Shown here piece after piece: positions 716-41,384 of a stretch of 64,000 bases of DNA. A program made the translations under genes and the position numbers. A model generated the notes under the pieces. That model saw only the letters and a list, made by a program, of their open reading frames with translations. It ran no database searches and was not told the origin of the DNA. Source of the DNA: Rebecca billardiae RCC1528 (Eukaryota > Protista > Haptophyta); assembly GCA_965240325.2 (NCBI GenBank), contig OZ251223.1, positions 1,674,001-1,738,000 on the forward strand. Direction: 5' to 3'. Positions within the stretch are counted from its first letter, which is position 1. Each line of letters starts with the position of its first letter.

Positions 716-1343
716 CGCACCCTGCCAGTACCAAGTCCAAAGTTGGGCGTGCGGGGTGTCACGCAGTGTCGCAGTAGTGGCATGTTAGGGCGCACGGCCC
801 CCCCGAAAGGTCTGAGCGTGAGCGAAAGCCGGGGGGAGGCGGCGCACGTGCTCCGCAAACTCAAAAAAGATAATGGCGCGCGTGATGGTGGGGATTTATT
901 TGTATAATTTTAGCAGGGGGCGGAAGCTGCTTATGAATGACATTCACCCCCCTTGAAGTTGATGACGGTTTGATTGCGTCAATATGTGAGATTCTCCCGC
1001 CACGTATTAATCTTCACTTTAAGCACCAGTCACACTTAGGAAAAAGCATGGTCCAATAGCAAACACCATCAACCCTGCGTTCGAACATTCTATGGTAAGA
1101 TGCCTGAATTGTAAGAGCCTGAAACAGCTCGCCAACCAGAGGAAAGAGAGGTTGGGTCGATGATCATTTGTTGATGAGTCATCGATTATTCATTCACTCA
1201 TCAACAAATGATGGCCGCGGCCCGCGGACCTGAAAATCTCATGAGCATATAAGAATTTCTACCGCTTCACGTACGAACTTTGACGATTCTCCCTCATTTA
1301 ATAGTTAGTGTTACCTGCGCGTCCGGGACCGCTTGACGAATAT

Positions 1344-1407
1344 GAAGGAAAACTTGAGCGGACAAATCTTCATAAGAAGGAAAACTTGAGCGGACAAATC
1401 TTCATAA
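1344..1407. repeat. 32-bp perfect tandem duplication
   Basis: GAAGGAAAACTTGAGCGGACAAATCTTCATAA x2. Confidence 0.9.
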
Positions 1408-1964
1408 TATCTCCCTTGATGATGAATACCACGCTGCGGCGGGTCCCAACGGCCGTCGGCATCGCATTCGTGCCTCGCTCACCCCGCGCGCCCCGCCCTG
1501 CCGACCCGCGTCCACGCGCGTGCGCGCCCGTCGCGCAGCCTTTTCGGTGCAAGCTCCGTTCTGCTGCTGCAACTACGAGTCGCTCGCAGACGGCAGAGGT
1601 GATGCTGCTGGCGGTCAGAGGGCGATACGATGCGGTGTCTTTGACTGGGCTGTGCCACTGCTACAACCTCGCCGCGATGGCTCGAGGTGAACGTGGCGGC
1701 TGAGGGCGTCTCAGCTCGTCCGGGTGTCACAAGCTGCGGGCGCACTCGCAGCCCCGCGGGCTGGAGCTGTGTTCGAGACTGTGGCTGGCGCAGGCGCACG
1801 AGGAGAGGGCAGCGCGAGTGTCTGCGTGCTCGCTGCATCTTGCTGCGCGATGGTCCGCTCGTCTGCTCCCACGATCTCGACCTATCTCGTCTGGGAGCGG
1901 CGAGCGCACGATCAGCTTGCAGCTGCCGTCGCGGGCGACGGTGCCACTGTCTCGTGGTCAAACA

Positions 1965-2268
1965 CAGCGCTCGGCGTGAGCAGCCCGCGGGAGCGGTGGC
2001 AGTGACCGAGCTGCGCCGCACCGCCGGCCGCACGCGCGTGCGCCAGTTGGGTGGCGTCGTGGCCTCGCCTTTCAGCCGTTTCATCCGCCGCGCAGGCCGA
2101 TTTGACGCCGTCAGCAGCGCTCGGCGTGAGCAGCCCGCGGGAGCGGTGGCAGTGACCGAGCTGCGTCGCACCGCCGGCCGCACGCGCGTGCGCCAGTTGG
2201 GTGGCGTCGTGGTCTCGCCTTTCAGCCGTTTCATCCGCCGCTCAGGCCGATTTGACGCCGTCAGCAGC
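1965..2268. repeat. 150-bp near-perfect tandem duplication inside the element
   Basis: Unit CAGCGCTCGGCGTGAGCAGCCC...GACGCCGTCAG repeated at 1965 and 2115 with few substitutions. Confidence 0.9.
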
Positions 2269-39020: not shown

Positions 39021-39961
39021 TGTCGCAGTGCAGCCTGGGCTTGCCCCGCCATTGGCTGCGTTTCTGACCGATGCTGCCAAGCCAGACGACCTGAAAACGG
39101 GCTACTCTTCCATCGTCACAGCACGCGGTCCTCACAGTCACGCCGTCAACCGGCAAGCGGCAGTGCCGGCTACCGTGTCCGTTAGGCCTCGGGATGCCTC
39201 AGATGTGTCTTGAAATCATATAGAATTGGTACGTTGGAAGAGATCGTATACCTGTGTAATACAAGAATGGATTGCGCCACCGCGCCCGCATTGACTTCGC
39301 ATCATGCAGCAGTAGTTAGACCAAGAGTATATCAGTCAGCAGGAGTAATGAGTATGATATCTGCACTTGCAGGCGCCTGTGCGCGGGAACGCCGCGGTTC
39401 AACGGGCTACTAGCGCGCGCCAGTCCTCGGGTCGGATCCTTTTTCGTCAGCCAATCCGGTCGGCACCGGGCACCGCCTGATGCAGGACTTGCTCGGCGAT
39501 TTCTGTTCCATCCGAGGCGACTCTTTATTTGGCCTCGGCACGGCTCGGCCCAAGGTACGGGGGCGCCATGACACAAGGCGCCGAGCTGAGCAGGGGGCCC
39601 ACGACACCGCACGCTACACTCTCCTCCGACCACGACTCTTGTGAGCTCGGCACACAGGAGGTGTATACGCTGCTTTGGTAGTCCCCTCTGCTCGGTGAGG
39701 TTGCTGCTGTCAGCGCCTCCGCCCTGCAGCGCCGCACCGCAGCCGCATCGTCGCTCGTCCGGCATATCATCACATTCTCGTCCAGCAGCTCACGTGCTGC
39801 CGCGTCAGCTCCGCGGCGGCGCGGTTCACTGTTTGAGATATGCGCACGCCTCGCGCACGCGCATCGCGCCATGTGCCGCACGCTCTCGCTCAACACGCGG
39901 CACACACGTACCGCGCCACCGCGCGCGCGTGAACGCTACGCGCAGTCCCCAATCTTTCTAG

Positions 39962-40102
39962 ATATATATATATATATATATATATATATATATATATATA
40001 TATATATATATATATATATATATATATATATATATATATATATATATATATATATATATATATATATATATATATATATATATATATATATATATATATA
40101 TA
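39962..40102. repeat. (TA)n microsatellite, ~70 units, abutting the element 5' end
   Basis: Directly visible. Confidence 0.97.
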
Positions 40103-41384
40103 TGGCCCGCGGTGCAGGGCGGAGCGCGCAGCGTGGAGCCCGCACCAGCGGGCCCGAACCACGTTTCAAAAAGATCTTTGATCAAGAAAAAAGGGACGGG
40201 GGGCGGCGGAAAAAAGGGACGGGGGGCGATTTTTAGGGCTGGCGGAGACCGAGTTTCGAGTTTTTGAGATCGCATTGAGAGGTCTATTAGGCCGAAAAAG
40301 AGCGCGCCCAGCTGATTCCCTTAAGTAAAGTGCGATCTGGACGTCAGCTGGACGTGACATTAGTGTAACGGTTCGTTACGAGCGAATCGTACTCGTCTTC
40401 CCGGATCGCCTGACGTCCGGACTGGGCCACATCCGGATCGTCGGAGGTGACGTGCCCCGGCACGATGGGCGATGGCGGATATGCGGGACGGCGCCTGCAC
40501 GTGCCTCCGGACCCGCCTCCCGCTTGCTGCTCACGCAGTCAGCTGCGACCGTGGCGCATGATCGCAGAAGCAGTGCCGGCAGTACGGCCTGCATCAGCTA
40601 GTGCCGCGCCGTCGTGGCGCGCGCGGTACGGTTGCGCGTTTGCAGCGCTCGCCGCTCGGCGACGGCACGCGCGTGCGGCTCAGGTGTGTCAAATGCGGTC
40701 TCGTCGGCGCGCTTTCGCCTGCCACCTCGTGCACCCGTGCCGCCAGTTTCATCGTCTTCATGAGGACTGCTGCTGCTGTCGCCATCCGCTCTCCATCACC
40801 CCGAGTCGCCGGTCGCGCGGCGCGCGCCGGTAGGCACTAGGCAGGGCGTACGGTCACTCACCCGTGCAACGGGTCAAGTGGCCAGAGTACGTCTGGTCGT
40901 TGGCTGGCACGGGCCGCAGCGCTAAAGCACCCTGCTGTCACACCCGACTCCTTCAGTACTCCGAGCTCCGCGGCACGACTCACTCGGCACGATCGCGGAC
41001 GGGTCGGATCCGAGCTGATCAGCCAGAGTTGGACACAGTTTGGCAGCTACTAGTAGTAATTCCGATGCCGATGGCACGATCGCGGACGGGTCGGATCCGA
41101 GCTGATCAGCCAGTTGGACATTTGGCAGCTAGTTGTCAGACGGACGTCCGATTTGACGACCGGTGCCGGGTGCGGTCTCAGGTCCGCTGCTGTGATTGTG
41201 TGAAGTGTGAATGAGTCTCGCGGTCGCGCAGGCAGGGCGACGGTCGGACTAATATAGCTTCAGTCATCTCAGAACCGACTTCAACTGGCGAACTGCCACT
41301 ACGGCGGAGAGCCGCGATTGCACGGCCACCGCGGGCCCCCAACTGCGTTGATTCTATGCAGAAAAGGACCGCGGAACGCGGTCA
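40103..41384 (+). mobile_element. Non-autonomous Helitron2/Helentron-like element, subfamily A (~1.28 kb), inserted in a TA microsatellite
   Basis: A|TGGCCCGCGGTGCA start. 5' hairpin GCCCGC-ACCA-GCGGGC. Inner IR CACCGCGGGCC at 41327-41337. 3' hairpin GACCGCG-GAA-CGCGGTC-A|T. TA repeats on both sides. Confidence 0.8.
40986..41131. repeat. Degenerate direct repeat (GGCACGATCGCGGACGGGTCGGATCCGAGCTGATCAGCCAG...) x2
   Basis: Copies start at 40986 and 41073. Confidence 0.85.

Follow-up and report, generated by a model that had tools for sequence, protein, structure and literature searches.

A probable non-autonomous Helitron2-type family with A|T insertion sites in the haptophyte Rebecca billardiae

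The 64,000-nt stretch of DNA analysed here (the window) comes from the haptophyte Rebecca billardiae RCC1528 (assembly GCA_965240325.2, contig OZ251223.1, forward-strand positions 1,674,001 to 1,738,000) and carries a group of mobile elements, represented by four complete copies and one orphan 3′ end that together occupy 7,944 bp, or 12.4% of the window. We read these elements as a non-autonomous rolling-circle family of the Helitron2/HLE2 type with two subfamilies, and assign this reading a probability of about 0.75. The module set of HLE2 elements is present, consisting of a 5′ T, a 5′ asymmetric terminal inverted repeat (ATIR) contained in a 5′ hairpin, a subterminal 3′ ATIR and a 3′ hairpin. 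In addition, copy 3 can be delimited as a discrete insertion of 1,613 bp at one AT. With A|T at both donor ends and at the target, the family has Helitron2-type end architecture together with the dinucleotide that canonical Helitrons target, and offers a clean natural case for how HLE2 enzymes choose their cleavage and target sites.

Copies and end architecture

An earlier reading of the window, made from its letters alone (the sequence-only reading), had proposed the four copies and the orphan 3′ end and put their share of the window at about 12%; all coordinates were reproduced. Subfamily A consists of copy 1 (783–3038, plus strand, 2,256 bp). Subfamily B comprises copy 2 (12479–15216, plus strand, 2,738 bp, 90 bp downstream of the IDO gene), copy 3 (17021–18633, minus strand, 1,613 bp), copy 4 (40103–41384, plus strand, 1,282 bp) and the 5′-truncated orphan (3049–3103, minus strand). 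As had been claimed, a host A directly precedes the TG with which each of the four copies starts, and a host T directly follows the terminal TCA of all five 3′ ends. The orphan has no ATIR, and its hairpin (GACCGCG-GAA-CGCGGTC), final A and host T are retained along with a spacer motif that contains a 6-nt insertion.

The geometry of the inverted repeats, measured by script, is asymmetric in all four copies and agrees with the 11–14 bp and the spacings given by the sequence-only reading. In copy 1, the 5′ ATIR AGGGCGCACGGCCC (787–800, plus strand) lies 4 nt from the tip and pairs over 14 bp, with one mismatch, with the 3′ ATIR GGGCCGTGCGCTCT (2983–2996, plus strand), which ends 42 nt before the 3′ tip. 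The 5′ repeats of copies 2, 3 and 4 all lie 1 nt from the tip and measure 13, 11 and 11 bp (12480–12492, 18622–18632 on the minus strand, and 40104–40114). Their 3′ partners end 43, 45 and 47 nt before the 3′ tip, at 15161–15173 (TGCACCGCGGGCC, plus strand), 17066–17076 (CACCGCGGGCC, minus strand) and 41327–41337 (plus strand), respectively. The ATIR sequences of the two subfamilies are wholly different, yet they are complementary within each subfamily. Symmetric terminal inverted repeats (TIRs) at the tips are found in none of these elements.

Each 3′ end closes with a hairpin that lies 1 nt from the tip and has a 7-bp stem and a loop of GAA or GTA. It reads GATCGGC-GTA-GCCGATC in copy 1 (3021–3037, plus strand, final A at 3038), GGCCGCG-GAA-CGCGGTC in copy 2 (15199–15215, plus strand, final A at 15216, followed by (TA)9), and GACCGCG-GAA-CGCGGTC in both copy 3 (17022–17038, minus strand) and copy 4 (41367–41383, plus strand). 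The flush stem described earlier is thereby reproduced, with the correction that the stem of copy 2 includes one G-T pair. Three pairs of this stem differ between the subfamilies by compensatory changes. When the terminal hairpin is taken together with the AAC-TNC-GTT mini-stem that precedes it, all 55 of 55 cells hold standard pairs and 4 of the 11 pairs display compensatory changes. Only 2 of 500 shuffles paired equally well, and slid registers were only 21–46% paired.

The spacer between the inner repeat and the hairpin, AACTNCGTT-N1-3-TTC, occurs four times in the window, compared to 0 expected. It includes the conserved mini-palindrome CAAC-TTC-GTTG of copy 1 (2997–3007, plus strand), which lies within the AACTNCGTT motif. 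The conserved spacer that had been claimed is reproduced, with the correction that the motif kept by the orphan includes an insertion. The 3′-terminal 18-mer GACCGCGGAACGCGGTCA is likewise enriched, with 4 occurrences at up to 3 mismatches versus 0.26 expected, and the 5′ 26-mer of copies 2–4 occurs 3 times versus 0 expected.

At the opposite end, copies 2–4 display 5′ hairpins that contain the 5′ ATIR, have stems of at least 12 bp and beat shuffled sequences, with z between −2.2 and −3.4. These hairpins span 12480–12528 in copy 2 (plus strand, C-GTA-G apical triloop, z −2.23), 18582–18632 in copy 3 (minus strand, C-GCA-G apical triloop, z −3.40) and 40104–40154 in copy 4 (plus strand, z −3.40). 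A GNA triloop, in the form C-GNA-G, is also seen at the apex of the 5′ hairpin; such triloops are unusually stable in single-stranded DNA. The two ends are related in a further respect, as the descending arm of the 5′ hairpin together with an AAC-NNN-GTT palindrome recurs as the 3′ ATIR followed by the same palindrome. The nhmmer profile of the 3′ end weakly re-finds this 5′ module in copy 2, at 12518–12541.

The elements sit intergenically in AT-rich spots of a GC-rich window, their flanks being 77% AT versus 29% for the window, with copy 2 adjoining (TA)n and copy 4 adjoining (AT)71 on its 5′ side. The family lands just past the 3′ ends of genes. The (AT)71 microsatellite is perfect (39962–40103) and touches the 5′ tip of copy 4, with TA-rich sequence continuing after the 3′ tip; a run of this kind offers many possible A|T targets. 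A separate detail is seen at 15217–15258, where the 3′ end of copy 2 is followed by (TA)9 and then by GTGTAACGGCGGAACGCGGCCTA. This segment repeats the core of the terminal hairpin, GCGGAACGCGG, 40 nt downstream and may represent a decayed second 3′ end.

Similarity between the copies is largely confined to their ends. Copies 2–4 have approximately 100–280 bp in common at the 5′ end and 60–70 bp at the 3′ end, with otherwise unrelated interiors; between copies 3 and 4 the common 5′ part reaches about 260–280 bp. Copy 1 displays no BLAST-level similarity to the others at its tips and has two short interior pieces in common with them. Its 3′ end can nevertheless be aligned with theirs, with 22 of 62 columns invariant. 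The interiors, which had been described as different, are thus mostly unrelated, but not entirely so, given these short common pieces and the longer 5′ stretch of copies 3 and 4. A blind scan of the window for a 7-bp stem with a 3-nt loop together with AT and an inverted repeat at the 5′ tip returned nothing beyond these elements, and nhmmer profiles of both ends, run over the whole window, returned no additional copies. A candidate further member from 15466 onward, suggested by its resemblance to a TTTTAGGG...GGAG motif, was rejected, as alignment reveals no real similarity and the motif is confined to copies 2–4.

The sequence-only reading had also called the elements cargo-carrying. This label is unsupported, because the interiors offer no domain, homologue or RNA family that would justify it. 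Ten interior open reading frames (ORFs) contain no Pfam domain, the longest of them (467 aa, copy 2) has no homologue at E ≤ 0.001 among 1.84 billion representatives, and the interiors match no Rfam family and contain no tRNA. The interiors are variable and apparently non-coding, and high GC content is the most likely source of their long ORFs. Inside copy 1 there are tandem repeats, with two units of 150 bp and two of 32 bp.

Empty site and abundance

Logan contigs of four public runs were compared with 12950–18949 of the window. One of these runs, here called X1, holds 59% of the sampled words of 12300–19000. A 546-bp X1 contig (record 6) follows the window from 16519 to 17019 and then continues straight on at 18633. 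The 1,613 bp that it skips match copy 3 in length exactly, and no extra letters separate the two flanks. At the empty site the sequence is TTCTA-AT-AAGTA, in which the two letters AT are ambiguous in their placement; in the filled site, AT is found on both sides. As the empty site lacks precisely 17021–18633, the boundaries of copy 3 proposed by the sequence-only reading are exact to the base. No contig of the reference type was found over 16550–16949, where the depth is that of record 6 alone, and the empty form is most likely the only one that X1 has here. Such an exact empty site suggests that the family may have been recently active in this gene-dense, GC-rich marine eukaryote.

In a separate region of the same run, X1 contigs skip 562–730 bp between 77-bp repeats of copy 2 (12980–13711), and shorter variants of the copy 2 interior are therefore present in X1.

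Contig depths summed over the 5′ end reach 146, compared to 6–40 between the elements; such a value does not give a copy number, although it suggests that many copies exist. The exact 26-nt 5′ end is found in a marine-sediment metagenome run, where five flanking bases (TAAGT) match as well and the sequence beyond them differs. A scan of viral contigs with the 5′ end gave no match. Three viral contigs did match the 17-mer of the 3′ end; they have neither the ATIR nor the spacer motif, and we regard them as chance matches. The end sequences were not found in print in a literature search.

Classification, mechanism and rival explanations

The Helitron2-like character attributed earlier to the ends agrees point by point with the published definition (PMC3627910, PMC5148889, PMC11417382). 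Helitron2 elements carry ATIRs of 8–15 bp and a 5′-terminal T; the 5′ copy of the ATIR, 0–2 bp from the tip, folds into a 5′ hairpin, and the 3′ copy lies upstream of a 3′ hairpin (PMC3627910). In the elements described here, inverted repeats of 11–14 bp start 1 nt (copies 2–4) or 4 nt (copy 1) from the 5′ tip, a 5′ hairpin is seen, significantly so in copies 2–4 only, the 3′ hairpin lies downstream of the 3′ ATIR, and the first base is T. What non-autonomous Helitron2 copies have in common with their masters amounts to approximately 200 bp at the 5′ end and 50 bp at the 3′ end (PMC3627910).

Close in layout is the Helitron2 group of Bao and Jurka (2013; PMC3627910), whose elements also have a 5′ ATIR hairpin, a subterminal 3′ ATIR and a 5′ T. 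Examples are the non-autonomous Helitron-1N1/1N2_CRe and CRe-1,2,3 of Chlamydomonas reinhardtii, a species in which non-autonomous Helitron2 families likewise share only end segments around unrelated interiors. Unlike in those elements, the 3′ ATIR lies 42–47 nt from the tip instead of about 20–30 nt, the longer spacer between ATIR and hairpin accommodates the AAC-TNC-GTT palindrome, and the tips read TG...TCA. The targets differ as well, being A|T here and TTTT|T/C in that group, and variable-length target-site duplications (TSDs) are not seen in the window.

FoHeli1 and FoHeli2 of Fusarium oxysporum provide a second point of comparison, with a 12-bp inverted repeat whose 3′ copy lies 20–40 bp from the tip and with GAA-loop hairpins (PMC5148889). 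They resemble our elements in their two end hairpins, the GAA triloops, the 5′ T, a non-TT target containing A and T, and boundaries confirmed by empty sites. FoHeli inserts after TNAT, the next base being given as A in the text and as T in the legend (PMC5148889), in contrast to the A|T target here, and the end sequences differ. FoHeli elements produce no TSD, whereas the empty site of copy 3 fits either no TSD or a 2-bp AT duplication. They are also autonomous, 5–6 kb long and RepHel-encoding, with joined ends demonstrated experimentally.

Other rolling-circle groups fit less well. Canonical Helitrons (HLE1) share the A/T insertion site and a 3′ hairpin, and they insert without a TSD. However, they have 5′ TC and 3′ CTRR ends and a hairpin 10–12 nt from the end and lack both an ATIR and a 5′ hairpin, unlike the TG...TCA ends and the hairpin 1 nt from the end found here. 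Helentrons and HINEs (DINE-1) are similar in their subterminal inverted repeats, 3′ stem-loop, abundant non-autonomous derivatives and association with simple repeats, but TT is their target, and an AP-endonuclease domain is present in their autonomous copies.

Since target choice already varies within HLE2, we regard the elements as a new family of the HLE2 type that targets A|T and not as a new kind of element. The suggestion of an undescribed hybrid family was overstated, as HLE2 families are already known to vary in target, in the distance between inverted repeat and tip, and in the use of GAA triloops. Ends of this type may be misplaced by annotation tools in which HLE2 targets are taken to be T|T.

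A mechanism consistent with these features can be outlined. A RepHel protein (HUH Y2 nuclease plus PIF1-like helicase) encoded elsewhere would nick at host-A|TG, bind the 5′ T covalently and unwind the strand in the 5′ to 3′ direction, upon which the 5′ hairpin would form in the displaced strand. Once single-stranded, the 3′ ATIR might compete with the local partner for the 5′ ATIR, bringing the 3′ end to the enzyme; the two competing stems, that of the 5′ hairpin and that of the ATIR pair, are of similar length. The flush GNA-loop hairpin would then place the second cut at CA|T, and the single strand joined CA-TG would enter an A|T where AT-rich DNA, (TA)n for example, melts readily. In this scheme, cleavage would fall at A|T in all three places, hence the expected lack of a TSD. 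A role of ATIR pairing as the mark for the end of the transferred strand was proposed by Bao and Jurka (PMC3627910). The recurrence of the 5′ module at the 3′ end and the covariation of ATIR and hairpin from one subfamily to the other provide sequence-level support for this idea. A domain that would help to recognize the enzyme is DUF6570, a marker of HLE2-clade RepHel proteins.

Several observations weigh against the Helitron2/HLE2 assignment. The target is A|T, in contrast to the T|T or T|C that is usual, if not universal, for HLE2, and the 3′ ATIR lies 42–47 nt from the tip, outside the published 20–40 nt. Subfamily A is represented in the window by a single copy, the 5′ hairpin of which is a possible bulged stem that performs no better than shuffled sequences (z 0.14); the 5′ hairpin that had been claimed for every copy is thus upheld for copies 2–4 but not for copy 1. 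Among the window ORFs of at least 250 aa outside 41.5–60 kb (three other ORFs unscanned), no Rep or helicase was found, in agreement with the earlier statement that the window contains no autonomous one. Two metagenome scans, one with a 5′ 24-mer and one with a 3′ composite motif, gave no match.

Two further points of this kind concern the empty site. A single AT in the empty site and an AT on both sides of the filled one fit insertion without a TSD and a 2-bp AT duplication alike. Of the earlier claim of A|T insertion without a TSD, the single AT at the empty site is therefore confirmed, but the sequence fits the duplication equally well. The flanks, the (AT)n context and the junction between copy 1 and the orphan do not separate these models, because both predict identical sequences there. 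Moreover, copy 3 lies inside a repeated TIR element, and the empty-site contig could therefore be a paralogous copy of this host element and not an allele. With a paralogous empty site, the boundaries would stand, but the case for recent activity would be weaker.

The same ends might be mobilised by a different HUH Rep, either a capsid-less CRESS-type Rep (HUH plus SF3 helicase) or a Replitron-like Y1 Rep, which we consider improbable. Cutting next to a stem, guided by a hairpin, is a general property of HUH enzymes (PMC10288648), and Replitrons are eukaryotic HUH-mobilised elements that occur in algae and protists, mostly without TSDs (PMC10288648). However, Replitron termini carry short direct repeats and have neither an ATIR nor a flush terminal hairpin (PMC10288648); the repeats of our elements are inverted, and the only direct module they share is internal, at the 5′ end. 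Furthermore, the combination of ATIRs with two hairpins is so far specific to HLE2. CRESS Reps nick within the loop of an origin hairpin that bears a conserved nonanucleotide, in contrast to the 3-nt GNA loops found here, which have no nonanucleotide and where the cut falls outside the stem. Should a non-Helitron HUH enzyme such as a capsid-less CRESS-type Rep nevertheless serve the TG-ATIR...hairpin-CA ends, for which we see little chance, HLE2-like ends would have been adopted by, or have arisen independently in, a second eukaryotic rolling-circle lineage, one whose cuts would fall at A|T in the target as well as at both ends.

The AT on both sides of the filled site and the one AT at the empty site are also what a tyrosine recombinase of the Crypton type would leave, if a circle with a ...GGTC-AT-GGCC... 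junction recombined at a target AT with a 2-bp overlap. The joined ends of subfamily B do form a near-palindrome, GGTCATGGCC, but those of copy 1 are not palindromic, and the ORFs scanned for Rep and helicase contain no recombinase domain. To our knowledge, Cryptons have neither ATIRs nor terminal GNA hairpins, and we judge this explanation very unlikely. Equally unlikely is a cut-and-paste DDE element with G...C ends and a 2-bp AT TSD, although AT is present at the flank of every end and TG...CA tips are common among DDE elements. In both subfamilies, the tips match as inverted repeats in only 5 of 8 positions, and the asymmetry of the inverted repeat (1–4 versus 42–47 nt from the tips) would not be explained by an enzyme treating both ends alike. 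We know of no family with an AT TSD, and no transposase domain was detected in the ORFs scanned for recombinases. A Helitron2/HLE2-type family thus remains our preferred reading of these elements.

Host element of copy 3 and genomic surroundings

Copy 3 is inserted in an unrelated TIR element (15466–18810, no strand assigned) with perfect 11-bp TIRs, GGGGGGCCAAA at 15468–15478 and TTTGGCCCCCC at 18800–18810. A 9-bp direct repeat, TGCCTCAGA, flanks this host element at 15457–15465 and 18811–18819; a duplication of this length would fit a Mutator-like element. After subtraction of copy 3, the host element measures approximately 1.7 kb, and its ORFs contain no Pfam domain. A 230-bp X1 contig (record 4), about 92% identical to the window, joins 18656–18782 to 15466–15568. 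It steps back by 3317 with two ambiguous letters (TA), placing the right part of the host element directly before its left end. This arrangement could reflect joined ends or else another copy, tandem or rearranged, at a different place.

The window as a whole is a gene-dense, GC-rich eukaryotic stretch. Its genes include those for a met-zincin, a bestrophin, IDO, a short-chain dehydrogenase, a Myb protein, a histidine phosphatase, Mpp10, the small chain of ribonucleotide reductase and Dcc1, with a spliced HAD hydrolase at the end of the window. An exact look-up of the met-zincin protein gave no match. For an exon of the HAD hydrolase, the best homologue in Logan and JGI proteins is about 42% identical, with a dictyochophyte and a haptophyte lower in the list.

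Several other features of the window are recorded here in their own right. An open frame of approximately 5,800 codons extends over 41535–58991 on the minus strand. Inside it, at 49368–57689, about 8 kb are made up of degenerate G-rich repeats of 9–36 bp, with a GC content of about 0.83 and a plus-strand GC skew of about +0.45. The lower-GC stretch after this giant gene contains a 61-bp unit repeated 2.6 times (60703–60850). At 8697–8998, (ATAGAG)24 lies beside (TC)50 in an intergenic position.

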